Shown piece after piece: positions 33,801-64,000 of a stretch of DNA of 64,000 nucleotides. This DNA comes from Orbicella franksi (taxonomy: Eukaryota), in the NCBI GenBank assembly GCA_964199315.1, contig OZ116705.1, positions 31,124,001-31,188,000 of the forward strand, given 5' to 3'. The notes beneath the pieces were generated by a model. That model saw only the letters and a list, made by a program, of their open reading frames with translations, was not told the origin of the DNA and made no database searches. The translations under genes were made by a program, and so were the position numbers. The first letter of the stretch is position 1; the number at the start of each line of letters is the position of its first letter.

Positions 33801-36800
33801 TATATTATTAACTTGATTTTCAACCTGATTCTACACTTTAGTATATTAATTTCTAAAAGTAATCAATAATGACTAATTATTATGAAACATTAAATAAGAA
33901 TGATAAGCAAGTGCTTCCACAGCTTTTTTTTTAGTTCTCCCAAACTTCCTCAAGTGTCTCTATAATTCAATAGAAACACCAAAAACATGTTTTCTATTTC
34001 TTTTAGAAAATTATGCAAAAACAAAAGAAAACAACTTGTTTACTTTGATCATCAAAATATAAATTATGTTTGCTAGTGCCATCATATGTCAACAGCTCGT
34101 GCTAGTTCTGTGTTCTTATTGAGTTATAGAAATGCAGTTTTAAACCAATCAGTGTACATATTTTCTTTTGGGATATTTTCTAATGAAACAATAATAAAAC
34201 ACCAACTAGCTTCACCACTTGTGTAATGTCAACAAAACATTTCAAAATGATATGAATGTTTCACCTGAAGCTCTTGAAGCCAAAACATCATAGTTTGCTT
34301 ATCTTTTGCTTGAAGCTGATAGATTCTTCCGGATGTACTAAACAAAATAATATTAAACAGTTTACTGCACTTCTACACATCCAAAGGAGCTGCCAAAGTC
34401 CCAAAATTTCTGGAAATCCAGTCTCATATAGACCTCCCAGTCTCATGCAGCCAACCCAGCCATATACAGGCACCCCAATCTCATTCAGCCAACCCAGACA
34501 TATACAGGCAGCCCAATCTCATTAAGCCAACGCAGCCATATACAGGCAACCCAATCTCATTCAGCCAACCCAGCCATATACAGGCAATCCAATCCCATTC
34601 AGTCAACCAAGCCATATACAGGCACCCCTATCTCATTCAGGTAACCCAGCTATATACAGGTACCCCAATCTCATGCAGCCAACCCAGCCATATACAGGCA
34701 AGCCAATCTCATTCAGCCAAACCAGCCATATACAGGCAACCCAACTACATATAGGCAACCTGATATACCACATTTACGCAACCCGAGTTACCTTTTGCCT
34801 CTTTTTCAAACAAATCTTTGTGCAAAACCTTTCATATGAAAATGAGTTTGATTTGTATGGAAATGAAGCTGTAGGCCAAATGCATTTTCATATGAATGGT
34901 TTCACATGTAGACTTGTTTTGATACCAAGGCTAAAGGCAACTCAGAAATGGCCTATCTCATACAGACAGTTCAGCCATATACAGGCAACCCAGCCATATA
35001 CAGGCAACCCAGCAATATACAAGCAACCCAGCAATATACAAGCAACCCAGCAATATACAGGCAACCCAGCCATACACAGGCAACCCAGCCATATACAAGC
35101 AACCCAGCTTTATACAAGCAACCCAGCCATATACAGGCAACCCAGCCATAAACAGGCAACCCAGCCATATATAGGCAACCCAGCTATATACAAGCAACCC
35201 AGTCATATACAGGCAACCCAGCCATATACACGCAACCCTATCTCATGAAGGAAACCCAGCCTCCCACAATGCAACTATATGCAGGCAGTTGGGCTTCATT
35301 TTAGCAAACTATGGATAAATTTGTCTTACCAAATCTTAAACCCATTCAGTCTATCCGCATCTTCTACATCAAAGGTGAAGGACGCGTTTGCCAAATCGAT
35401 ATGGCTGAAAGTACACAAAACAGTTATATGCATTAAAATATATATAGCACAATTTGATTGTATAATAATTTTATTTCAGTTTTTATTTGAGAATCTGATG
35501 ACTATGTGACTGGAGGCCAGCTCGAGCCAAAAAAAAGTAAAGCAAAGATCTTTATGGTACATTGTACATAACCACTTCAATTGTTAACAATACAATCACT
35601 CTCAATGGTACAATTAAAATATGTCCCAGGTGACCAGCTGTCAAGTGAGGGAAAAGTTAAGTACCAGCTAATGGTGAATTCTGGTTATTTCAATGCCATT
35701 CTGGTATTGCTTACAGTTCTTTCAAATTTATTTGTAACATCATACTCACAATAAAAACCTTACCCAAGAGGTGTGACATCCTGTGGAGTTCTGTAATAAT
35801 ACAGCTTGCACTTTCTTTCCTCATATACAAACCATCTTGTTTTCCATGTTTTTAATCCCTTTGCTAAATTTGTGATAAACATAAATCATACATGTGCTAT
35901 TGAAGAAGTGCTAGGTCTGTATTGAGAACATATATTGGTCTGACTACAGTGTAGTTCTTTGTCTGCTAGCCTGTGGACAGGCTCTGGATGGAAGGGTCTG
36001 ACCACAGCTCGAAGGGCCAAGAAGGAACTGGTCATAAGTAACGCGGTCCAAGGGGGATTGGGTGGGTGGTGGTCGTTGACTAGAGAGCCTTTTCTATGAT
36101 CCTTGACAAGACAGCCTGTTCACAAATGGAGCAAGCCATAGCTTGTTTTCCTAGCTAGGCGGACTCAGTCATTCACATGTTACCTCAAGTGCAATTAACT
36201 GAGCAACTATAACATTAGTGGGTATTTATTATGACTGAGAAAATTACTTCATTTTGATCGGCTTACTCCACTAGGCCTTCAAGTTAAACTCTGGCAACAT
36301 GATGTAACCTTACCTAATAAATGAATGCCAATATGTTTCTTATCCAATGTACATACTTTACTGGCTAATTAAAAGGTACACTTATGGATAAATTTACTTA
36401 CCTCCAAGCTTGTTCAGAAACCCACACAGCTTTGGAGTACCACTGGTGATTTTCTGACACGTTCAAAAGACACAACATATAAATTTACTACATATGTGTG
36501 AAAAAGGTCACCATGTCAAACATGCGTACTTCAATATTTATAAAACAAACGTTTTCAGCTACCACTCTGAGCAGGCAAACCTCAGAAAGTGAAATACACT
36601 GTACTTTATTGAAAGGTTCTACACATGTCCCTGGGATCGCTTCGCAGTAAAGAAAGCGAAATAATGAGCTTTCGATTGCTCACTTTTAATTTAACTTCCT
36701 TGTTGGCACTTGCTTTATATAACAGCTGTTTACTACACCCGATCTGCGGTTCAGTGCAGGTGAACAACAACTAAACCTCATTTGGACCTCTATAAGGGGC

Positions 36801-37124
36801 GCTACCTAATAATTTACCACGTAATTAATAATTATCAAAGCTAGACCAAGATTGATTAAGCTTCCCAAACGTTTATCCCTTGTACAATAGATCAATTATG
36901 CAGGAAACAAGGCTAGACATGGGTTTTAACAAATCACAACATACATTGTATCGATCGATGGAGCTCTCATCAAAGAATTTGCCGCGAATTTTAAATACCT
37001 TGGATTTGTTATTTCCGTCATTCTTTTCAAGAGAGGTCTCAGAGTCATCTTGAGGAGTTTCTTTACCAGCTGTGGAGTGCTGAATTTCCGCTGGGACAGA
37101 AACAAGCTCCCAAGAATCCTCCAT
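21303..37124 (-). CDS. TBC1D2B: TBC1 domain family member 2/2B-like RabGAP (PH + coiled-coil + TBC), multi-exon
   Basis: First exon 37124-36999 (MEDSWELVS...). PH exons: 36453-36402 (KLCGFLNKLG), 35863-35764 (KTWKTRWFVYEERKCKLYYYR), 35404-35330 and 34337-34265 (IYQLQAKDKQTMMFWLQELQ). TBC exons near 24.5 kb (IELDLLRT, R finger), 24.0 kb (LLAYSWHNLDVGYCQ, Q finger), 23.9-22.1 kb (GLNRLVAIALL, FNWFLTIF, LRVWDTFLFEGNKVLFRFAL) and 21785-21708 (IAFQLLNPFP). Last exon 21401-21303. Some coiled-coil exons (28-32 kb) were not fully traced. Confidence 0.93.
21789..21882. repeat. Short degenerate tandem repeat (AAAGCACATAATT-type) in a TBC intron next to an acceptor
   Basis: Repeated gcacataatt / gtacataa(t/g)tt / tacaaagca motifs. 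Confidence 0.6.
22322..22545 (-). mobile_element. tRNA-derived SINE (GGAAAACCGGAGAACCCGGAG family)
   Basis: The minus strand starts GGGATGGCGCAGTGGTGAGAGCGCTCGCCTCC...GGGTTCCATTCCG (A/B-box-like), followed by the typical body. It is intronic. Confidence 0.8.
24773..24829. repeat. (GA)n microsatellite
   Basis: Pure GA run in a short TBC intron. It explains the LSLSLS tract in the ORF track. Confidence 0.97.
25030..25300 (+). mobile_element. tRNA-derived SINE with central TAGCCAACTGG..CCTCC..CCAGTTGGGA domain; degenerate sister copy at ~27145-27380
   Basis: GGCAGCGAGGCCGAGTGG...GGGCTCAAGTCCCGCTCTGACCAC head and AGTTCAACTCCTCGGTCA body, shared with the 27.2-kb copy. Confidence 0.75.
34435..35240. 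repeat. Minisatellite: ~8 x 38-bp units, then a MITE (~34775-34956), then ~14 x 19-bp units
   Basis: The 38-mer CCAATCTCATTCAGCCAAC+CCAGCCATATACAGGCAAC has period 38 (TCTCAT at 34441, 34479, 34517...). The second array is only the 19-mer CCAGCCATATACAGGCAAC. The intervening element ends GGCAACTCAGAAATGGCCTAT and is related to 32990-33165. Confidence 0.9.
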
Positions 37125-37582
37125 GTTTTGGACACTGGAATATGGTGAACTGTCGGAGGAGGTCGGAAGGTTTCGGTTTTCGTAAAGTATGTTGAGTCCA
37201 ACACCAGAAAAAAAAAGCTACAGGTTTAAGCCAGTACCCTTTTAGGTTGAGTAGACCTAGAGGAAAACTTAGCTGAAAGGAACAAAGAAAGAGGGAAAAT
37301 GCCTTCTATACATGAGAAATCCGATTACCCGAGGATATCTGAAATTTCCCGACATCTCAGTATCTACTCGGGCCCAGTTTACGGTCTTCCTCTCCCCACT
37401 CGGCTACACTGAGTTCTGCTGCATGGTCGATGCATGTAAGCCTTTTATATTTAACGTTCATGGAAAGACGGGACTCCTAACAGCACTGAAACAATAACAC
37501 CAAGAAAGAAAAAAGAGCAGAAAAAGAAGAAAAAAAGGTATCTTTGCTTTATAGTTGGTGTTTCTTGGCGTCTTAGGGAAAC

Positions 37583-37606
37583 CACGTGACGGTACAAAAT
37601 GGCGGC
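37583..37606. promoter_or_regulatory. E-box plus YY1-like motif in the divergent TBC1D2B / DDX21-like promoter region
   Basis: CACGTG at 37583-37588 and CAAAATGGCGGC at 37595-37606, between head-to-head genes. Confidence 0.5.
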
Positions 37607-38536
37607 CACCGGCACATGAAGTTGTTGCGTCACATTTTGACCAGTGCTTGCTGTTGGTTTAAGTTTCTGACTTAAAATTAACGACAAGCCGTAAAAAAGT
37701 GATCCGTAAATGATGGAGATTTGTTAGTATCATTCAAGAGAATATCGTGATCAAGCAATTAGTGTGCTGTATGTAAACTGAACTTGCACGTGGAAAATCA
37801 TGTGTAAGCTTACCTGAAATCTGCGTGGAAATCAACTAAATCGATGAGGCCCATAGATTAACAATCTTTGTCAGCAACATTTTTAGTTGATAAATGCTTT
37901 CTATCGAATCCAGAACTGAGAAACCAAGTGGCATAGCACCAAACAACAGTTACTTGAAGAACTAATTTTTATATTGGGGACACTCACACCGTGAACACTT
38001 GACATTTAATTTTTTTGCACATTTTTTCAGCGACTATGGAATGAAAGTTTTTCGTATCATCAATAGTGTTTACTCAGTTTTTTATACACTATGAAAACAC
38101 TGGTATTGTATATTGCAGGAAGAGCCTTAATTCTGTAGTCACCAAAAAAATGCCCCAAAAGTGGAGTCTGCATAAGTGTCAAGTGTTTAAAGTTCAAGTG
38201 TCCTCACTAGAACTGTATTTAAAAAATTCTGGTATTTTTTTAATGCTATCTAAAAACATGCTTATGTTTAGTAAGACATGATTTTAAGTCATGTTGATAT
38301 GCTTGTAGCTTATTCTTGAGAATACAGTTGAACCCCTATTAAATGGCCACCCTCAGGGAAATGGACTGTGGCCGCTTAAAAGGGGTTGGCCGCTTAATAT
38401 AGGTAGAAACAATAGAAAAGCCATCATTGGGACCCATAACACCTGCTACGGCTGAGTATGTTTGATGGGCCCTGGATGTTATAGGCTAACTATAGTTGAT
38501 ATAATTCATCTTAAGTGTACACGTAAGAAGTTTGTT

Positions 38537-38589
38537 ATGTGAAGTATATATGAAATAATTCATATTTGAACTGTGGTTGTAGATGAAAA

Positions 38590-38634
<45 letters not shown>

Positions 38635-38880
38635 ACAAGAAGCCTGAAAAAAATCAGGGCTTCAATGGGACTCGAACCTGTGACCTCCACAATGCTGGTG
38701 CGATGCTCTACCAACTGAGCTATGAAGCCACACATTGAGAGCAAGGTCAATTAATTGAGTTCATATATTCCCGGGAGGAGTGAAATGATGTGAAGTATAT
38801 ATGAAATAATTCATATTTGAACTGCGGTTGTAGATGAAAGTGAAGAATGATCATTGCATTAAGTGAAGATCATTCTTCAC
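38537..38880 (-). mobile_element. Tandem ~251-bp tRNA-derived repeat unit (about 1.3 copies); tRNA-like core 38658-38729
   Basis: ATGTGAAGTATATATGAAATAATTCATATTTGAACTG occurs at 38537 and 38788. The minus-strand core is GGCTTCATAGCTCAGTTGGTAGAGCATCGCACC...GGTTCGAGTCCCATTGAAGCC. Confidence 0.8.
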
Positions 38881-39092
38881 TTTTAAGTTTGTTATGGGTG
38901 TGTAGATCAAGACTACAGTTGACTTAAACCTTAATGACAGCCCTGCTCTGTACATTGTCTATTTCAGTGCAGGTTAATCAGCGGTAGAAAAATGAATTGA
39001 TTTAATTTTAAATTGGTTGTTTGCTTCTTTTTCAAGATAAATATAAAAATAACTGGAAATTGTAAAAAGTGGTTCTTCCATCAAAGCTAAGG

Positions 39093-42000
39093 ATGTCAAG
39101 TTCAGTAAGAAGAGGCGGCATAATGCTGTTGAGGGGGATGAAAAGTCTTCCGCAAAGGAGCAGCGCAACACAACTAAGAACCATATATTCCTTAACAAAA
39201 AGGTACTGGTAAGGCAAATTTTGGTGTAAATATTGCAAATTTTTGCTAGTGAACTTTCAGTTAAAGTTTGCCCATATTTCTCAGATCTATTGTGCAAGGC
39301 TAAAAACAGTGCTGCTTTTAAACGTTTGCAAGGTTTATTTTGACTAAACAGGAACTTTCACTTGCACTAAATAAAAGTTAACTAGTACACTTGGCACATT
39401 TTTATTAAGAACATTCAGTCCAGTCTTCGTCTAAATTGTCAAGATGAAGATCAAATCAATTTTTTTTCTTGTAATATATTTGAAGGTACATTAAAAATAT
39501 ATGTGAACATGTAAGCACTAAAATACAGAATAATGGGAACACCCATAAAATAGCTAATCCCAACCCTGAATCTATTCCCCATTAATCTACAGAATGCTGT
39601 AATTCTTTATAATTATTAATAGTTACTATTACTTCCAAGGATATCCCAAACTATTTTATATCATTTTGTTCCAGATTTGAGTACACAAATTCTCAAATGT
39701 TGTGGCCTTAACATGTAGAAGACATAATATTTTGTTATTAGTTAGTGATAAGAGAAATAAATGTATTATTTACTTTACAGACCTACAGGCCTTTGCAATT
39801 ACCAGCTTCCTAGAGCATTATCTATCTTGAACCCTGAAATCAAGGTAAATAAATGTAGAAGAGCAGGAACTTGGCTTAATATTTTGATAGTTTTTAAGCT
39901 TTAAAAAGCTGCTTCATTAGGATGGTTGTGATAATTTTATATTGATTTTCTCACAATTTAGTACTTCTCTCTTTACCTCTGTTGAAATCACAATCTAGGT
40001 ATTACAAAGACTGTAGACCATGCTTGACTGTGTAGCCCATGTACATGTAAGTGACAAACTTAAACAAGACTTTTATTGTGTGTCCAGCAGGAAGCAGAGC
40101 AAGAAGTGAAAGATCAATCTGAGTCAGGAGAATTTTCTAAATTTAGACTCTCACAGGAGACGATAGAGCAGCTGAAAGGTTAGATTAATTTAATTTATTC
40201 TGTGGCTCAAAATTCTTCATTTGACTAATAAAATGTACTATTGATAACAAGTTCATCTTGAATCCTTATGTGTACACTGTAAATTATAATTAAATATTTA
40301 ATTAGTTAACATCTAGTCTTGATGTATAATTTTTTTTCTTCTTAGGAAAGAAAATCAATTACCTTTTCCCTATCCAGAGTGAAACATTTGATTACATATA
40401 CAACGGTGAAGATCTTATTGCACAAGCGAGTAAGTTTGTTATAGAAATATATTCACATGTCTCAGTCATGCTTATTGCAGATTCTCCTGTTCTTCCTCTC
40501 TGGCTACCTGTTCACAAGTCACACATTTTCATTAATTGTGTTTACTCTTCGCCTATACTATAAAGAAAGCTAAATAGCGTCCTAGGAATATACCTTCTTG
40601 CATTACTCAATTTGTATTCTAACCTGTTTCTATGATGTGGATAGTCTTGTTCCATTGGCTTTTACAACTTTTAACTAGTTTATAAGCAAAAATGTTTTCT
40701 GGATGCTCAAACCAGGTGGGCAAAATGTCTTACAGCTGGACAATTTGCCCAGTGCCCAGCCACTGATAGGACCCTGTTATACAGTACATGTCCCCCAACT
40801 TGCAGTCCCCTAACCCTGGCCTATGGGTGTATAAATATTACTAATAAAAATGATTTGTCTTTTTATAGGAACGGGCACGGGGAAAACGGTAAGTGGGCCT
40901 CGTTTTGTGAAACTGCATCATGCAGTTAACATGGGTATGAATGGACAGCATTAAAACTTAGTCAGCATACCTGTAATTGACTGCAATTCATTATTGTAAA
41001 TAACAACAATGATAATAAATTTATACAAATCTGCACAGAGGAAGTGTCCGTCATGTGAATAGTTGGAAGTTCTAACAATTCCCCTTCCCCACCCCATAAA
41101 GTTCAAACCCCTTTGATAACACAATCTTAGCTGCATTGTAAGTTTAGAACATTTGCCACTTAGGTTTTGTTTCATTTGCCATGGTTTTACACATATATGT
41201 TGTTTTTTTCAGCTGTCATTTGTACTGCCATTAATTGAAAAGCTTAAGTTACAGAAGCTATCTGTTAAGAGAGGAAGAGCACCCATGGTAGGTATCAAAG
41301 TTTTGTCAAGTTATTAATTATCTCCAGCTTTAGATTGATTTTTCAATTCAGGCAGAAGATATAAAAATGAAAGTCATCAACTTGAGAATGTTTTTTTTTT
41401 GACATCTTATTGTGTGTTGTATTGTGCAGGTTTTGGTCTTGACTCCAACACGAGAACTTGCTAAGCAGGTAAGAGTTCTTAAACTTGCTAAAATCCAAGG
41501 GCAGTTGCAAGTCAACCAGTCAATGTGCTTTGCACTGAATGTTTTAAGCAAATGGTGTACATGTACCTCATGAGCTGTGGATTCTGTGCTTTACATTAAC
41601 TTCACAGGTTAGTGATGAGTTTGATTATTTGAAGTCCGATCTTGCTATGCACTGTCTGTATGGAGGAGTGTCTTATGGACCACAAGGTATACATGTACAT
41701 TAATTATTATAGAACAGCCATCCTTTTCTGATCTACATTTTACTTCACAATTTGTTTGAAAAGTGACATCCTGATTTCTCTGGTTCCTGTTCATGCTAGC
41801 CAGATCATGTACAATGTGATTATAATCATGTAAGTTGTGGACAATATTCTCAACTCAGGCCTGCACAGGTAGAGAATAATCATGAAATCTGTAAAGGCCA
41901 TAAAGCTTGAGAGTGGCACCAAATAGATAGGGACGTGGCTTCAAGCCAAGGAAAAATTATGGAGAAGTCTATGAATAAATTTTTAAACAGAACACTGTCA

Positions 42001-45000
42001 GATTGTTGATTCTTGTTTGTTGTCACCCTCTCAGCTGGGGCAATCAGAAATGGACTAGACATTGTTGTGGGAACACCTGGAAGAATCATTGATCACATGG
42101 TTAATGGTACACTGGATCTTACACAGTTGAAGTAAGTGCTGTAGAATTTCTCTGTTCATACAAAACTGCAGCTTCAATTGACTTTACGGTGTATGTAAAA
42201 AGTTAATTTTAACACTTGATCTGTTTTTTTTTGTTTTTGTTTTTAATGAACATTTTATAATGTATGTGTGATGATGTAGTACAACACCGATTGTATCTAA
42301 TTAGTAGAAACTTTTCATCCATTGCAGACACGTGGTTATTGATGAAGTTGATAGGATGTTGGACATGGGATTCGCCCAGTCTGTTGAGGACATCCTTGAA
42401 GAATCATACAACCCTTGTGAGTAAACAAACTTCTCTGTCTAACACATTACCATAACAGGGATTAAAAAGTTGCAAACTAGAGTTATCTGGGCTGTCATGT
42501 AAATTGAAGACCCTGAATGCTGAATATGATTAATTTGGAACAAACATCAGAGTAACTGATGAACAAATCATTTTTTTGGGTTATTTTTTCTTAAGATGTA
42601 AAGTGAATCTTGGCTAAAATCAGTTTTGTGTGGTGTTGAATTATTTTTAATGTTGATAATTATTTGTTTTTTCAGCTAGGGAAGAGAAGCCTCAGACACT
42701 ACTGTTTAGTGCAACATTACCACCTTGGGTTGTCAAGACTGCTGAGAAATACATGAACCATGACAGGAAAATAGTGGACCTTATTGGAGAGCAGGAACTG
42801 AAAGCATCTGAAAGTGTGCAAGTAAGGCAAATCAGCAACTAACTAATAGATGATAAATTGATAGAGAAATGCTTTCAAAATTGAAGCTTTCATTTCTGTA
42901 CTCTGAGACATGCCGACCACTTACCGCACCATATGTTTTTCTTTGTTTGTTTGTTTTTGATAACTGTGTTAACTACTACCTGTTAACATCATCTGCTGAT
43001 ATTCGTATATTTGTTTGTTTACTTTCAGCACCTGGCCATCAGATGTCCGTATGAAGCTAGAGCCTCCACACTGCGTGATGTTGTACAGGTGGGGAAATAT
43101 ATCGATATTGTATTTACTTGTAAGCAGTTGGTAAAGTCTCTGTTCATGAGTCCATAACTCTGTTATCTCATGCATGAAGTAGCCAGGTGCATTGCTTCTC
43201 CAAATGAATGACATGCTGGTCTATTTCACACTGTCCCATGCAATTTTGGTCTGAAAGTAATTTAAAAGTGGTTACCATGTAAGGCTCAATCAATTCGCAC
43301 TTGCTTCTGTTGTGTCTGTTGTCCTTTCCTTTCTTGCCAGTTTAGTAGCTCCTCTTCTCCCCTTACCACCATCCCCGTGTGCAACTCTCTTGCCTTCCCC
43401 CGTAGTTGCCAGTTTCTGTCAGGTGGCTTAGCTTTCTTTGATGAGATGATATTGATGATGATGCTGATGTTGTTGATGACGACGACAATGATGATGATCA
43501 ACCACTAGATCAATTTTGATTCTTTGTATTTTTTTTTTTTTTTTGTCTTACCCAATTTCTTGTTTCTAGGTTTATTGTGGTGCCCACAGCAGAACTCTTA
43601 TATTTACTGACACAAAAAGAGAAGCAAGCAGTTTGGCCTTGAATTCTGTCTTAAAGCAAGTAAGTCACAGGCTGTTAGGCCTTACTGATCCAGTATCAAT
43701 TCAGTGAGAGTAATTTTAGCCAAGTTTCTGAACTTGGTGACTACACACTCACTAAGTGAGAGTTACATGTAGTTGTTCTTGATGTTTGTAGCTCTAAGTG
43801 CAGACTCTGGCTTCATCTACCTGGACACCATAAGATATCAATCTTCACCGGTTACTCATAACTTATACAAGTTACCTAATTACTGAACAATCTGTTCAAT
43901 AAAAAGATGTCTGTTTTCTGTTTTGTTCAGGATGCACAGGTTCTTCATGGAGACATTGCTCAGGAGCAGAGAGAGATAACTCTTAAAGTATGCCTTTGTT
44001 ACTTAATTATTTTCCCCTGATTTGCTAATTATGACAACCTACCCTCACCTCCAGTAGTTAATGTTGTACAGCTATGTTATATGAACAGTACAAAATGTAT
44101 TAATACGTGATTATTTTCATTAGGTTTGCCCTGCTTCTAAAAACTTATTCAAACAAGTCCCAATTCAGAGTTGACATATTTGCAATGTACCTTTAATTTT
44201 ACTGAATTTATGCTGTATTTTGGTTGATTAATGGAACCCCCTATATTCATTCATTCAATCTAATACATTCTAATTCATTCTGTGGTATTGGCAGAGTTTT
44301 CGTGATGGAAAAGTTCGTTGTCTGGTAGCCACAGATGTCGCAGCAAGAGGTTTGGATATCCCAGAAGTTGATCTGGTTGTGCTGACTGAACCTCCTAAGG
44401 TAGGCTTAAAAAAAATACTGCATGTCTCTTCTATTTTATTGAGTCATGAGAAGGATAGCTAGATGGACATTCAAAGTGTAATTCATCAACTTCTGCTACT
44501 CAGAAGAGTACAAAGCTAATTGAGGTATAGTCCTGTACTTCTAAATAATAAAATTTTGAACTACACATGATAAAGATTAGTATCAGGAAAATGCATGTAC
44601 CAGTAACCGTGCTTATGATTTAGGATCTTGATATGTACATTCATCGGTCTGGAAGAACAGGGAGAGCGGGCCGTGATGGAATGAGCATTGTATTTTACAA
44701 GTCAGGAGAGGAACAATTATTACGTGCAGTGGAAAGAAGAACTGTGAGTACTGGCAACAACACTCTTTTTGAAACATTTCAATATGTTTTAATTTGTAAT
44801 CCAAGAAGATATCTTTATCCACGTAGTGTACAGACTTACAATCATGGATATAATATATTTTTAATTATTTTATAGCAAGGTGTTCTTGAGGTAAATCCAA
44901 GCCTTTTGATTGTTTTTTACTATGACAGGATTTTACCATACAGACTGCTTCCATGGAAACGGTCATAAGCCATGTACATGTAGTTATTGTTTTCGAAATC

Positions 45001-47904
45001 AAGCAAGTACCATATATAATGCACTAGTATTTTTATTTTAATAGTAATTTTTAAAAAAAAATAATAAACTAGTAACTAATTTTTTTTTTTTTCTGCCACA
45101 GGGAATTAAATTCAAACACATTTCACCTCCATCAATAAATGAAATTGTCGAAGCTTCAGCAATGGATGCCCAGAAGTAAGAAATTTTGATGATGGTGATG
45201 ATAACAGTGTTAGAGCAACTTATTAATAATAATTTGACTACTGTTGTGTTAGGTATATACAGACGGTTTCACCTGAAGTTCTTGAGAAGTTCCGTGGTGC
45301 TGCTCAAGCACTGGTGGATAAACTTGGTGCAGTGGATGCTGTTGCAGCTTCACTTGCTCACATTTCTGGAACCAAAGAGATCAAGTCACGATCTCTCTTG
45401 ACTGGGCGAGATGTATGTATAAAAACATAATCATGTTCAACCTGGTTTGTGGCTAGATAGCATTTTAATCTAATGTGAAAAGATATTGTTTGGTGAAAAC
45501 TAGGCCAAAATATTGCTGGAATGTGTGTTATGAAAATTTGGTAGTACTGTACAGTACAACAAGAGAATGTTGCAAATTTCTTTCAAGTGATGTTTAGTAG
45601 CAGAAATAAATTAATATATTTTATCAAAGATAACTATAAAAAGCATTGAAGTTCTGGCTTTCAAACACCCTATAGCTGATCATTGTTTTTAAGGAAATGA
45701 GAAGTACAATGGAATCTAGATTTATGTTTTGGATTATCGTAAGTTGAACTTGTGATTGTCCTTGATGTAACCAGTGCTGCTAACAGCTGGTGAATAATGT
45801 CATGTCCTTATGACACAATACCAGTCCAAATATCCTGCATACCTGCCACAATCCCACAGGAAAGGACTGGCGATTTGTATCTTAAAATACAGACTAAGAA
45901 ATTGAGGTTAATGAGATTTTTATTATATCTCTTGCTTCGTAGAAAGGAAAACATTTTAAGTCATGGGTGTAGGGGTGGAACATACTGAGGAAATATCTAC
46001 CAATTTCGATATAATTATTAAGATTCAGCCTAAAACAATGCTGAAGAGACCTCAGTACAAGGCTCTGGGGAATAACTACAGAGTTTGCTGTATTTATTCC
46101 CCAGAGCCTCATGCTGAGGTCTATTGTGTTAGGCTGAATTTTGATAACTGACCATTTAGGGTCGTGGGTTCAAATCCCATCTGGAACTATAGGATTGTTT
46201 TCCAAGTTGATGTTATTTCTACGTTTAAAATTCCTCATATTAGTCACTTTGGAGGGTGGTCTATTATTGGCACTAAAGTTGACCAATCCACTGCATGCAT
46301 GTGTATGTGCATATTATGGACTATAATGATATCATTTATTGTATTCAGGATCACACCACCTACCTACTGAAGGCTCCTGTGGAGATCCGTGGAACAGGTT
46401 ACATGTGGCGTGCAATGGAAAAGACCCCAGAAGTGAAAGACAACGTGGCAGTTATGAGGATGTGTAAAGACAGACAGGTGAGATGTGATGTTATATATTA
46501 AATGCAAACTAATATTAGTTGAACGGTGCTTTCATTGTACAGAATTCTGTCTGATGTTGCATAGACACATAACGTGCTCTGGATTTCTTACTATTACTGT
46601 ATAACTTTTTTAAGGAGTTAATGTCATTGAGCATGCATATTCATGTAGCTGATAGTAAACCACACTTATTAATTGAAATTATTTTTTGTCGAAAAGAGGA
46701 TTCCTCCTTTTTCTTCCTGAGTGCACTTATGTTTATTCCGACAGTTGCTAAAATTTGGTTGATCACACATACTCCTTAAATCCCTGGTTGATGTATTTGT
46801 CATGCATGACAGACTGGCAGAAGCATATCACCTCTTCAAGGTGATATGCTTCTGAGACTGGTTAATATGACCTTTTGCTGACATTGGTCTGTTACCTCAA
46901 CAGAGTGTTGTATTTGATGTACCAAATCAACATCAAGAAAAATTAGAGGTATGGCATTTCATCTCCCTTGAAGTTAGGATGCATTGTGCATGGTTTTCCT
47001 TGAGAATAGTAGGTTTTTTTTACAATGTGATTTAATAACAGTTGGCCAGTAGGAGGACTTCGTTCTTGATTGCGGCTCCAATTAAGTACTTACAGGAGGT
47101 TGTGGCTGGGGACAGTGTGGAAATAGTCCTAAATTTCAAAGTAAATGTGGGCCTTTTCTTTGAAATAAGGAAAGCTGTTAAGTTGCATAAGAGAGGGCCC
47201 CCTCCTCTTGACCTAGCTAAGGTCACCTCAGGGTAAGTCTCAACATAGTGCTACAGCAGGGGTTTCATTGAGGGCCAGGCACTGGGTAAAATGACCACCA
47301 GCGAGGATGATTTTGCCAGCCTGGTTTGACCATCTAGAGGAAGGTTTTTCTTAGAATAAAGTTCTGTTCAAAAAGTTTTATCTGCCTGTGAGAACCAGTT
47401 GCCCTCTTGCTAAAAATGTCAATGAAACCCCTGGCTACAGTACGAACAAATTGTTAATTGAAAAAACTAGTCCAGTGTTGAGGGGTTAAACTATAATCTG
47501 TCCAGGTAAAAAGTTTTAGATGATGGGCAAAACTAGCTGAGCCCTAGCCCTGAGCTGGCCCTTCAGCTTAGCAAAGAGTACCAAATTGAATGGAAAAGTG
47601 TAAACAAGTTTTTGAATTATTTTCATCACAGGAATATTGGTTGGAAGGCAGAGGAGGAGTAATACTTACAAAAATAACTGAACTTCCAGAGCTGCTTGAA
47701 AGACCTCCGCGTGACCCAATGGGCGGTGACAGAAAACCAGGCTATAGAGACAGATATGATCGAGAGGGATTTGTGAACCAGAGAACTGGTCAAAGGGATC
47801 AATCTCGGAGTGGTTATGGTGGAAAGGCGTCATTTGAAAGAGGTTTCATTCCAGATCGTTACCGTGGAAAGGACTCTTACCGCAAAGGTTTCAATTTTGA
47901 TTGA
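39093..47904 (+). CDS. DDX21: DDX21/DDX50-family DEAD-box RNA helicase (DEVD motif, GUCT domain) with a putative mitochondrial presequence; 21 coding exons
   Basis: Motifs read across GT-AG exons: Q motif ([15 protein letters not shown]), AQARTGTGKT (40869-40888), [27 protein letters not shown] (42328-42416), [42 protein letters not shown]-like exons lie at ~46349-46950 and an R/G-rich tail runs to TGA at 47904. The first exons are 39093-39202 and 39781-39844. The symbol denotes family, not proven orthology. Confidence 0.92.
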
Positions 47905-53076: not shown

Positions 53077-55442
53077 TCAGGAAAACATGGAGTCATGAAG
53101 TGTTTCCACTCGAAACTGCTGGTCTTGCTCCTTAACCTGTGAAGAAAATTATATAAATGTAAAATACCACATATTATTTAAAGATACATCATGTTATGGC
53201 TATTTTTTAACTGATCAATGATTTATTATTTAAAAATTCTAACTTTCATAACAATACATATTTACTGACTGTAAGACTTTCATCAAACATCTAGATTCAT
53301 TGAATTAAAAAAAAGAAAAACACATTTGTGGAACTGCATACAGAATGATGTCCTAATACCTTTAAATTTTTCATTTCTTCATATTCAGGGTCGTCTGTAG
53401 GCAACTCATGTCTGCACAGAGGACAACTGTTAGTCTAAAAGAAAAAGCACAAGATTCAATGATCACAGTCTCATAGTAATATCTTATTTATAATATACAG
53501 ATTTAGCCAAGCCTATAAGTGGAGCTCCTGGGTCGGGTTGTTCAAACCCCAATTAAGCTAACCCAGGATAAGCGAGAATTTTGATTTGAGTTTTGTAACT
53601 TTACGGTGAGATTTACTGTTTACATGGTTTGGCCTTCTGTTCTGAGTTTCAATTATCTCAAACTGCACAAAACAAAAGCAGTGAAAAACATTTGTATACC
53701 TTCAGAACAACCCGGCCCTGATTAACAAGTTAACTTGACATGACCCTACGATCAAATTGAAAACCAGTGCTTGGTCAGTGGTCAACTCATGAGCTCTAAA
53801 CCTGAGTCTGTGATGTTCACGTCATACTAGTCAGCGGCTACCTTGTTTTGACAGCTGTCAATTGACCATAACATGGGTGTTCAAGGCTGCATGTTTCAGT
53901 CGACCTATTAGCTGGAGTATTCTATATATAACATTGTGGGAAGTACCTCGCATTGGTACTCCTGCCCCGTTCGTACTTTCTCTTTTGGGAATTATTCTCT
54001 TTTCTTTTCTTCCTCAATATATTCCCAATAAAACTCATCACATTATCAAATTATTTTATCTGTTTAGAATTTCCTGAATTTTTTTCCTAGTCTTGAAATA
54101 GTACTTATGCTTATGGCTGGTATCAAAGAACTGTTGTATTTCTCCGATCACAGAAATTTGGTCACTGATGTGTAGAGACCTGTGATTATTACCTTTGATA
54201 ACCAAGGTAGAATACAACTCTGATGGAACATATGGTCACATGGAAGCTGCTTGACATTTTCACCAATCTGACATCAAGAAACAAGCAAATATGCAGTCAG
54301 AAGATTGATAAATAAACCAAAACATGGAACTGTCTCCAAATAATATGGGAGCTAGTATAAATAACCACTGAGGGCTCAGAGGTCTGACTGTAACCATCCT
54401 TGTCTAAATGGTAATGCATTTAATACAATTCTAAATGGTTTAGGTGCATTGAAAATTGATATCAAATGGACTGAATGTGTGGATAGACACCTTTATAAAT
54501 CTATTAACGAGTTGTTGCAATAAGTGGAGACTTAAACTAGAAAAGATAAGCTAGCTAGGTGCCCAGTAAATAAGAGTTACTCACCTTATATTCTGCTTGA
54601 CAAATGGGACAGGAACAGCCTTTAACTAACAAACAACAAACAATTACAACCAAAATAATAACAGATATAATATACAAGATGACACAAGTCTACTTATAAG
54701 CCCCTGGGATGATGTAGTACCTGCATGTTTGTTCCAAGCTTCATAAGCATACATGTTACTTGCACTTGATTCATTAAGCAACTGACAGTGGATGTTGTTT
54801 TGTCAAAAATGCAGCTGCTTTTTTTCAAAAATCAAAGTCAATAATGAATGAAAAAGTAGTACGAAACGGTGCATGCAAACTGTTACAAGCATGGAGCAGA
54901 ATTGTTAGACATTGTGTAGTTGTGCACATAACATACCAATGTGTTCAGCAGTTATGGGTACAGCTGGTAGAGATTCTACAACTTCTTTGGAAGCTGGTGG
55001 TGCTTGAATTTGATCAAATGCTGCTCTTTAAAAAAGAAATTAATAAATAATGCACAATAATAAGTAACTGACAATACAGTTATTGATAAATTTTATTTGA
55101 CGAATACATACCTTGCAATGTCAAGCAGATCACTGGCAGACAGAAGCATCCTGAGAGATGAAACACAAGCCGTGTTATAGTGAAATAATTCATGATCAAG
55201 TTTCGGCTCTTTACCTTTCTATATAATTCAATTATTTTATTAGTCAAAATTAAGCTCAGTGAGATTACAGAATTTATCAACTCATCAAAAAACGTTCTGA
55301 CTGTTTTCCCACTCTGTTAGAAACGTATCCTAAAACTTAGAGCCTATTAAATAATAAATTTACTACACCTTGCGAGCTCAAGGAAGAAATCAGGATTGCT
55401 TGTTCGGTCTGTGAGTTCGTGCTCATCAAAATAAGATGCCAT
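53077..55442 (-). CDS. RNF181: E3 ubiquitin ligase RNF181 (RING-H2), 150 aa, 7 exons
   Basis: Exons 55442-55369 ([15 protein letters not shown]), 55150-55112, 55025-54937 ([13 protein letters not shown]), 54625-54585 (CPICQAEYK), 54267-54193 ([17 protein letters not shown]), 53434-53360 ([19 protein letters not shown]) and 53136-53077 (LHDSMFS*). The 453 nt are in frame. Confidence 0.95.
53508..53720. mobile_element. MITE with (C)TGGGTCGGGTTGTTC / GAACAACCCGGCCCTG termini
   Basis: Imperfect terminal inverted repeats and no ORF, in an RNF181 intron. Confidence 0.7.
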
Positions 55443-62724: not shown

Positions 62725-63351
62725 ATGGCAACCAACAAAGTTGTCAATGGTATCACGAGCCAGACGGCCGAGGCGAAGAAGAGAATGACAAAAGAGGACG
62801 ATGAAGGGTAAAGTGACTTCTGAGTTTGTCAATATAACGCGCAAAATTCGCGAAATTATACGCGAAAATAATTTGTAATTTATTATGGGCACCACATAAA
62901 GGGCCAAGAACTTAACTGGTCTTAATTCTTGAGTTTGCCTGCTGAGTGCTAGTGTATGTTTAATCCTTTGTGAATATCTACGTGTATTTATACGCTTCAC
63001 GCAACTCTATTCGAACTTGTTTCGAATGCGTGGCGCGACCGTGTCTACCATCTCCTCACAACTTCCTTTCTTATTGTTTCTGTTTCACAGCAAGCTCTTC
63101 GTGGGCGGACTCAGCTATGAAACTACCAAAGGTAACTTGATGTTTTTTGGTTGAAATTTTTCTTTAAATATGAAAATACGCAAGTAGTAGATAAATTGTG
63201 AAAGTCTGTGCGAACCAGGTGTGTGTGAGTTGTTTACGACCTGCGGCTAACAATTCTCTTCTAATTCAGAAACTTTGACAGATTATTTTAAAACTTTTGG
63301 TGAAGTTATCGGCGTTGAAATAAAGATGGATGCCTTAACGGGTCGCTCAAG
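62725..63351 (+). CDS. hnRNP D/AB (squid-like) RRM protein, 5' part; continues beyond the window
   Basis: Exons 62725-62807 (MATNKVVNG..KEDDEG), 63091-63131 (KLFVGGLSYETTK, RNP2) and 63270-63351 (ETLTDYFKTFGEVIGVEIKMDALTGRSR). Phases 2,1,2 are consistent. I cannot separate hnRNPD/AB from DAZAP1 or Musashi with certainty. Confidence 0.88.
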
Positions 63352-64000
63352 GTTTGTAGAATCATTTATACTTTGTGTATGCTGTTGTCGCGAGACTTCA
63401 ACTGAATTAAATGGAGAAGTACTAGTTTTGTAATTTTTTAGCCCGACAATGTATTCTTTTGTAGTCGTCGCCCCACGTGCTCGGTGTCTCTCAGTTGACA
63501 TATATAATGTATGGAGAAATCAGCTTTAGATTTCGCAGCTTCGTGTGCCAACACACGTTTTCTTTTGTTTTTCTGTTAACTTTCTTAACGCCTTGGAGAA
63601 TGACTGCTAAGATTTTAGCCGACGTGTGAAAATAAAGCAATTGACCCGGATATAACAGGAGAAGTCGATTGATCTTGAGCGAGACGGGTTTCTTGTCTTG
63701 GTTTAAACAATTCAAGTGAAAAGAACAGTCTTATAAAAGGCGACTGGTGTCTTAATTCTCGTTATAAACAGCCCCCTGTAGAGAGCCATTTTTCGCGGTT
63801 ATTTTCTAGTATAAACACATGCATGCATAGAAGCACGCCATTAGCGTGCGCGAAGATCGAAAGACGATCAAGAACTCTAGTTGGCGCCGCAGATCGCTGT
63901 TTTGACTGAATGAATATCCTACTTTTATATTTGACGGCCTAGGCTGTGATCGATATTTTGGGAAAGCGATCAAAAAATTTATATTCTAGTTTAAACAAGG

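Follow-up and report, generated by a model that had tools for sequence, protein, structure and literature searches.

Which N-terminus does the apparently single DDX21-type RNA helicase of a stony coral carry, and where does it send the enzyme? This question is raised by a 64,000-nucleotide stretch of the Orbicella franksi genome (GCA_964199315.1, contig OZ116705.1, positions 31,124,001 to 31,188,000 of the forward strand; hereafter the window, whose own numbering is used throughout), which contains a DDX21-type gene on its plus strand. A first-pass annotation, made from the letters alone, had suggested that it may be a DDX21 paralog retargeted to mitochondria and had named it a candidate host factor for group I introns. 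Using a combination of approaches (RNA-seq junctions, cDNA-to-genome mapping, frame translation, tblastn, domain and structure searches and a maximum likelihood tree), we showed how the gene is spliced, that one exon is read in two frames in complex stony corals, that the corresponding frames of the window are homologous to these, and how the two forms are distributed among coral lineages. Taken as a whole, the reading that we somewhat favour is that a leader overprinted on an older frame, together with a 64-nucleotide (nt) cassette exon, has provided a single-copy DDX21/DDX50 gene with a putative mitochondrial presequence.

Splicing and start codon of the window gene

Splicing was followed over positions 36500-42400 with two stranded polyA RNA-seq runs of a congener (X21 and X23) and two metatranscriptome contig sets (X1 and X3). 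The first mates lie on the minus strand; the RNA is therefore plus-strand, and the reads of the 5' exon have the same orientation as those of the rest of the gene. The gene model was obtained by mapping a closely related transcript contig (L008, a merulinid cDNA) to the window and refining the exon ends to GT-AG. It runs from 39093 to 47901 and comprises 21 coding exons, all GT-AG, which form a 2001-nt open reading frame (ORF) of 666 amino acids. The features are as follows, K-rich standing for lysine-rich and K frame for the frame that encodes the K-rich N-terminus:

37151..37537, plus strand: 5' untranslated exon, GT..AG joint 37537/39037 (63 reads in X21, 21 in X23; set-X1 contig covering 37151-37534 and 39034-39200); its upstream limit is uncertain, coverage lying mostly in the last ~100-250 nt.
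37455..37537, plus strand: relic of the ancestral K-rich first coding exon, K frame ...ITPRKKKEQKKKKK(R), with no ATG after its last stop (three-frame translation of the spliced leader).
39037..39202, plus strand: dual-coding exon, with the live frame from ATG 39093 and, as the other frame, the decayed K-rich one (RNA-seq exon ends, frame translation).
39038..39052, plus strand: two TAA (39038-40 and 39050-52) closing the K-rich frame at the exon start (sequence).
39053..39202, plus strand: K-frame relic, homologous to the K-rich N-termini of complex corals (tblastn).
39063..39065, plus strand: upstream TAA in frame with ATG 39093 (sequence).
39781..39844, plus strand: 64-nt frame-switch exon with the R-A-L/S motif, which gives TAG if read in the K frame (RNA-seq joints).
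40088..40178, plus strand: exon 3, start of the conserved body with the Q-motif region GEFSKFRLS, and a NAGNAG acceptor (RNA-seq joints).
40869..40888, plus strand: 20-nt micro-exon encoding the Walker A core (R)TGTGKT (RNA-seq joint, translation); the read aligner gave it only as 18 letters inside joint 40430/41212.
40346..47901, plus strand: the other 18 coding exons, encoding DEAD, Helicase_C, the DDX21/50 dimerisation domain, GUCT and an R/G/Y-rich tail (cDNA-to-genome; exon 4 starts at 40346 and the stop codon ends at 47901).

The ATG (39093-39095, A at -3) lies in an internal exon, to which the 5' exon is joined by about as many reads as support the next junction; the 5' exon is therefore present in essentially every transcript. 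TAA triplets (39038, 39050, 39063 and 39088) shut all three frames over the first 55 nt of this exon, so that nothing upstream can be coding and ATG 39093 is the first usable start, as the first-pass annotation had proposed. The nearest in-frame stop upstream, in the same exon, had also been foreseen, at 39061, two positions away from its true place. The same annotation had named an alternative upstream exon as a threat to its start codon: a spliced 5' exon does exist, but it cannot be translated into the helicase body, every frame being closed at 39038-39090, and the upstream exon was rejected as coding.

The ATG exon ends at 39202 with the donor AAG/GTACTG, and joint 39202/39781 is supported by 51 reads in X21, 25 in X23 and contigs of sets X1 and X3. 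A stronger-looking donor at 39208/39209 (CTG/GTAAGG) was discarded: it would produce a TGA with the next exon, and no listed RNA-seq joint uses it. The 64-nt exon, flanked by AG..GT and passing from phase 2 to phase 0, is joined on both sides by spliced reads and contigs. The following exon opens with GAAGCAGAG at 40091, the major acceptor of the NAGNAG site at 40086-40091 (cagcag/G); joint 39844/40091 outnumbers joint 39844/40088 by 25 to 8 reads in X21, the minor form, with its extra glutamine, making up about a quarter of the junction reads. The two forms correspond to the Orbicella isoforms X2 (40091) and X1 (40088). Joint 40178/40346 was likewise seen, and reads cover later junctions up to 42328. 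Both the ATG exon and the 64-nt exon are thus spliced in, and the translation of this RNA-backed model equals the peptide that had been deduced from the letters.

One exon read in two frames

The N-termini of DDX21 homologs sort into two kinds, K-rich and leader type. At NCBI, both kinds are isoforms of a single gene in Acropora millepora, A. palmata, A. muricata, Montipora capricornis, M. foliosa and Porites lutea, isoform X1 being K-rich (e.g. MELQAVKKRKSAKKEKK...KNHVLVKDQE) and isoform X2 of the leader type (e.g. MASPVRRGAQTLLMGLKNLHQRSS...NYQLPKAFSLLKPAEK). Both kinds also occur among independent Acropora transcript contigs, which have a common 5' end and a length difference of exactly 64 nt (L001 and L002 versus L003 and L004). 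Without these 64 nt, a K-rich ORF of 691 codons starts at the first AUG, whose context is weak (T at -3). When they are present, the K-rich ORF terminates inside the insert, and a second AUG, situated 110 nt downstream in the +1 frame and strong in context (A at -3 and G at +4), opens a 676-codon leader ORF. The cassette is exactly 64 nt long in the Acropora cDNAs and also in the Desmophyllum genome. In two natural mRNAs of one gene of Acropora, Montipora and Porites, a shared stretch of nucleotides is thus decoded in different frames; the window itself has one live frame.

The other frame of the window can still be recognised. Its K frame at 39062-39202 matches residues 27-74 of Porites lutea X1 in tblastn (50% identity, E 3e-12), and it also matches the Montipora (E 4e-8) and Acropora (E 4e-5) proteins; the relic at 37455-37537 is weakly similar to the K-rich N-termini of Acropora and Montipora. 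This K frame ends exactly at 39202, so that skipping of the 64-nt exon would join it in phase to exon 3. In the 102-nt overlap of complex corals, the substitutions numbered by leader-frame codon position are 43 at the third position against 25 and 23 at the others, counts that are summed over three non-independent pairs, those of robust corals being too few to be decisive; they speak modestly for a stronger constraint on the leader frame than on the other. A region-restricted search with the Porites K-rich N-terminus returned no matches, the isoforms being hidden inside 90% clusters.

A single-copy DDX21/DDX50 ortholog

The first-pass annotation had recognised a DDX21-family helicase with the DEVD motif and a GUCT domain, and both translation and Pfam bear this out. 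The window protein is 99% identical to Orbicella faveolata XP_020623257/8, and Pfam finds DEAD (1.9e-44), Helicase_C (8e-29) and GUCT (5.8e-23) on the 99%-identical protein P0205; PF26142 (DD_DDX21-DDX50, the dimerisation domain) is a precomputed annotation on all coral orthologs. The helicase motifs Q, I (AQARTGTGKT), II (DEVD), III (SAT) and VI are present, and the GUCT and dimerisation domains sit C-terminal to the helicase core. Among solved structures, the human DDX21 core (6L5M) ranks first at E 1.6e-145, with Thermus Hera next. A PDB search with the family-specific exon 45260-45412 gave nothing useful, and an exhaustive phmmer search with the same exon returned mostly fragments and one entry-point homolog (P0009). 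A long lysine/glutamate-rich (K/E-rich) N-terminal region is missing from the expressed window protein, as had been noticed; what remains of it is a dead alternative frame.

The proposal that the gene is a retargeted paralog did not survive. In a maximum likelihood tree of 44 sequences, all scleractinians form one clade (support of 100 in the Shimodaira-Hasegawa-like approximate likelihood ratio test, SH-aLRT), sister to sea anemones and inside animal DDX21/50. This clade splits into complex corals (Porites, Acropora, Montipora) and robust corals (Desmophyllum, Pocillopora, Stylophora, Oculina, merulinids and the window), with the window grouping with Orbicella and one sequence per coral species. 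The second, K-rich DDX21 gene that the first-pass annotation suggested looking for did not turn up: two database searches each gave one cluster per coral species, and the K-rich and leader forms are isoforms in Acropora, Montipora and Porites. From the single clade and the single sequence per species, it follows that the window gene is an ortholog, not a paralog, and on these comparisons we identify it as the single-copy scleractinian DDX21/DDX50 ortholog; the tree and the database match lists rule the paralog out.

The scleractinian stem branch is about four times as long as that of the anemones (0.65 vs 0.17), and the Nematostella DDX21 is as close to bilaterian and octocoral proteins as to those of stony corals. 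This suggests that the helicase body evolved faster at the time when the new N-terminus arose.

Distribution among lineages and proposed origin

Among the members of the database clusters, the K-type and cassette-type sequences are distributed as follows:

Robust corals (about 37 sequences): K-type 0, cassette-type about 37.
Acropora: K-type 9, cassette-type 4.
Montipora: K-type 3-4, cassette-type 4.
Porites: K-type 3, cassette-type 10.
Complex corals in total: K-type 15-16, cassette-type 18.

The splice toggle survives in complex corals, and the cassette form is fixed in robust corals. The K frame of the window is dead, with its two TAA at the exon start and no ATG in the relic of the 5' exon; in the merulinid cDNA it is open and has no ATG; in Pocillopora it has lost its lysines and acquired stops, the leader frame being conserved. 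Desmophyllum keeps the leader ORF and the 64-nt AG..GT cassette. The cassette looks constitutive in the window and in the other robust corals. One 522-residue robust-coral sequence (P0211), considered as a cassette-skipped transcript, turned out to be merely a 5'-truncated contig.

Some public gene models of robust corals depart from this arrangement. In Desmophyllum pertusum (MU827815.1, 4495-4605 and 5045-5108), model KAJ7323421 wrongly follows the relic K frame and leaves out the 64-nt exon, although the genome contains both the leader ORF (MLSLVRKGRVLRLMGMKNL...) and the cassette. The Pocillopora damicornis model pdam_00002942 (490 aa) is missing several core exons. In addition, the name "nucleolar RNA helicase 2" is used in species that have no nucleolar-type N-terminus, which deserves an annotation flag.

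Outside the stony corals, only a K-rich N-terminus was found for the Nematostella DDX21, whose locus shows no open alternative frame in the K-rich exons, and Actinia and three octocorals are K-rich only among the sequences found. From these K-rich-only outgroups and the coral pattern, we place the origin of the arrangement in or close to the scleractinian stem.

We propose the following course of events. In the scleractinian ancestor, the second frame of a K-rich exon of the nucleolar type would have gained its own ATG, and a 64-nt (3n+1) cassette exon would have arisen in the following intron. When the cassette is skipped, the K-rich frame continues into the helicase body; when it is included, the K-rich frame stops within it and the overprinted frame enters the body, providing an acid-free leader rich in R, S, T and L that ends with the conserved R-x-[L/F]/[S/A] motif. 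In the robust lineage, the K-rich start codon would then have been lost, the K frame would have filled with stops and the cassette would have become a normal exon, the new N-terminus being the only one made. Finally, cleavage by the mitochondrial processing peptidase (MPP) near L50/S51 would send the helicase to the matrix, where it might act as a general RNA chaperone (mitoribosome or mitochondrial RNA maturation), rather than as a dedicated group I intron factor.

The leader as a candidate mitochondrial presequence

The counts on which the first-pass annotation had based its presequence agree with ours: the first acidic residue of the window protein is residue 56, and a hand count on the translated peptide gives 7 R, 2 K and 12 S/T in residues 1-55. 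Residues 1-40 have a net charge of +8 (6 R and 2 K) and 11 S/T. The R-2/R-3-like motif that it had pointed out is present as R48-A-L/S51, fits the R-3 rule of MPP and stands just before the acidic start of the conserved body. The leader is conserved in ten scleractinian genera with a length of 50-58 residues; across corals, the first acidic residue mostly falls at 56-60, the net charge is +7 to +9, R prevails over K, and the hydrophobic moment (muH) is 0.5-0.6. The R-x-[FYL][SA] motif occurs at residues 39-49 in eight of nine scleractinian sequences, Acropora having K-A-F-S. Moreover, the retention of the K-rich form beside the leader form in complex corals suggests that the two have different destinations. 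An Atlas feature search of residues 1-60 returned unnamed clusters only (scores of at most 0.74). By these features of its sequence, the leader is a putative mitochondrial presequence with plausible import, and we judge import into mitochondria, alone or in a dual fashion, to be rather probable.

In hydrozoans, the same helicase is found both with a K-rich/RRRPRTRS-type N-terminus and with one resembling a mitochondrial targeting sequence (MTS), the latter unrelated to the coral leader. Hydra vulgaris has two sister paralogs (P0098 and P0286), one K-rich and one MTS-like, the latter on a long branch; Clytia hemisphaerica (P0145 and P0266) uses alternative first exons.

Beyond Cnidaria, reptile and bird models named 'nucleolar RNA helicase 2(-like)' (P0156, P0159, P0179, P0190 and P0138) bear a conserved extension that precedes the usual MPA... 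start; it is 80-100 residues long, rich in R, A, L and P, poor in acidic residues, and contains the motif PPHFLLRAAGAG; it could be a translated GC-rich 5' untranslated region (UTR) or an alternative targeting extension. Two proteins of unknown eukaryotes (P0139 and P0125) have MTS-like starts, and P0109 is listed alongside the hydrozoan MTS-like cases.

Several points weigh against a purely mitochondrial presequence made by a fixed cassette. First, the maximal muH of the leader (0.59 over the 18 residues 5-22) was reached by 150 of 2000 shuffles and is not significant. Second, frame-shifting of a K-rich code (AAG/AAA) tends to yield R/S-rich, acid-poor peptides, so that composition alone is weak evidence. 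Third, the conservation of the leader is unusually high for a presequence. Fourth, a purely mitochondrial fate in robust corals would mean that the nucleolar function has been lost there, which may favour nuclear or dual targeting. Fifth, some skipping of the cassette may still occur in Orbicella franksi.

Alternative destinations and the group I intron question

Two other destinations were weighed as well. One of them is dual targeting, in which a weak or ambiguous presequence would share one product between mitochondria and the nucleus or nucleolus, for example by way of the R/G-rich C-terminal tail, thereby replacing the splice toggle. It agrees with the single gene and single isoform of robust corals, with the in-frame Met11 and Met16 of the leader, which could give shorter leaders, and with the R/G/Y-rich tail; however, no nuclear signal was identified, and the long scleractinian stem would fit a change of function equally well. 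We hold this variant to be rather improbable.

A similarly small probability is what we give to the leader being an alternative basic nuclear or nucleolar localisation signal, or a regulatory peptide, with the protein nucleolar in all corals. The conserved role of DDX21 is nucleolar, and robust corals carry solely the leader isoform of their sole DDX21-family gene; the basic composition is an expected by-product of frame-shifting a K-rich exon, and the conservation exceeds the usual level of presequences. Nevertheless, the leader has none of the K/R clusters typical of nuclear or nucleolar localisation signals, and it combines 55 acid-free residues, a preference for R over K and an enrichment in S/T with a conserved cleavage-type motif placed before the acidic start of the mature protein. 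In addition, complex corals have retained the classical K-rich form beside it, and hydrozoans have evolved unrelated MTS-like N-termini on the same helicase.

As to what an imported helicase would do, the first-pass annotation had thought of the mitochondrial group I introns of hexacorals (ND5-717 and COI). CYT-19 and Mss116 are chaperones of organellar introns, and the leader is presequence-like, which would agree with this idea; however, co-occurrence with organellar introns fails, as MTS-like forms exist in Hydra and Clytia, hydrozoan mitochondrial DNA not being known to contain introns, and the anemones Nematostella and Actinia, with ND5-717, are K-rich only, with no alternative-frame ORF at the Nematostella locus. 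RH3 similarly serves chloroplast group II introns (PMC8648619), and the scleractinian ND5-717 has a large P8 insert (PMC8146996), yet the intron is an obligatory, vertically inherited feature of every hexacoral order, that of the sea anemones among them (PMC8146996). The leader isoform being scleractinian while the intron is found in all hexacoral orders, the distribution gives this idea no support. Import specifically as a group I intron chaperone is thus in our opinion very improbable. For the overprinted presequence that we favour, a general role in mitoribosome assembly or mitochondrial RNA processing appears more likely than an intron-specific one, in view of the taxonomic distribution.

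A link to the enlarged ND5-717 intron of corals is speculation. As a tentative and rather doubtful extension, stony corals might have invented a mitochondrial version of their only DDX21 by overprinting and a 64-nt exon; complex corals would toggle between a nucleolar and a mitochondrial enzyme by one splice choice, and robust corals would have fixed the mitochondrial form and given up the nucleolar one. The helicase could then be a long-range RNA chaperone, with a timing that would fit the growth of the giant ND5-717 intron and the processing of polycistronic mitochondrial RNA in Scleractinia/Corallimorpharia.

Other features of the window

The intron between the 5' exon and the ATG exon contains a repeat (38273-38863) where RNA depth is very high, the summed contig depth reaching about 68,000, and where many contigs have loose ends. 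The repeat includes a tRNA-Ala(AGC)-like unit on the minus strand (38657-38729; Rfam tRNA, 47.7 bits) and is probably a tRNA-derived short interspersed nuclear element (SINE) expressed from many loci. Just upstream of the 5' exon, an expressed block at 36999-37136 (set-X1 contig, depth about 120), one contig of which runs on for 255 letters absent from 36500-42400, is probably an exon of a neighbouring transcript. The upstream neighbour in Desmophyllum, on the opposite strand, gives a weak Rpn13/ADRM1 match. Further downstream, two open frames suggest other genes: a RING-finger-like piece at 53300-53434 (minus strand) and an RRM-like piece at 63251-63430 (plus strand; FKTFGEVIGVEIKMDALTGRSR).

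Significance

If true, the proposed course of events offers a clean natural example of the birth of a new sorting signal. The K-rich exon was pre-adapted, its +1 frame being arginine-rich and acid-free, and a 3n+1 cassette makes the peptide usable while leaving the enzyme untouched. One clade shows both the intermediate stage, the toggle, and the final one, in which the new form is fixed and the old frame decays. The protein is a nuclear-encoded candidate for coral mitochondrial RNA metabolism, and the ratio of its isoforms is measurable in Acropora and Porites. Cnidarians have reached an MTS-like DDX21 in three genetically different ways, by a cassette, by an alternative first exon and by duplication, which suggests that the helicase has repeatedly been needed beyond the nucleolus. 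The coral isoform sequences are already in public annotation, where their relation is undescribed, and in our literature searches we came across no publication on a DDX21 that is mitochondrial or dual-coding.

Comparison with known systems

Human DDX21 (nucleolar RNA helicase 2, or Gu-alpha) and DDX50 have the same domain order as the coral protein (Q motif, DEAD with DEVD, Helicase_C, dimerisation domain, GUCT and basic tail); they have a K/E-rich N-terminal region of 180-220 residues, instead of which the window protein has a 55-residue acid-free leader taken from another frame.

Mss116, CYT-19 and DDX28 are mitochondrial DEAD-box proteins with an N-terminal presequence, and the coral protein is presumed to be alike in this respect. 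They belong to other DEAD-box subfamilies, have no GUCT domain and have a proven mitochondrial role, whereas the coral role is one that we infer.

In plants, the GUCT helicases RH7 (nucleolar) and RH3 (chloroplast) show that the family likewise serves both nucleus and organelle, through nuclear and organellar clades (PMC8648619). The first-pass annotation had added PMH2/RH53 to these plant GUCT helicases, which was not confirmed, as the same paper names RH3 and RH7 only and leaves PMH2/RH53 unmentioned. Plants use separate genes, like Hydra, and the RH3-type proteins add a Zf_CCHC domain, whereas stony corals use one gene and a frame-switch cassette.

Finally, dual-coding regions that depend on alternative splicing form a class already known from INK4a/ARF and from surveys of human genes (PMC13160074; bioRxiv 10.64898/2026.05.28.727796), in which one exon is likewise read in two frames in two isoforms and a 3n+1 splice event, upstream or downstream, sets the frame. 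Unlike cases of the INK4a/ARF type, the two coral frames are alternative leaders on the same enzyme body, a nucleolar-type signal versus a presumed organellar one, and in one coral lineage the new frame has become fixed while the old one was lost.

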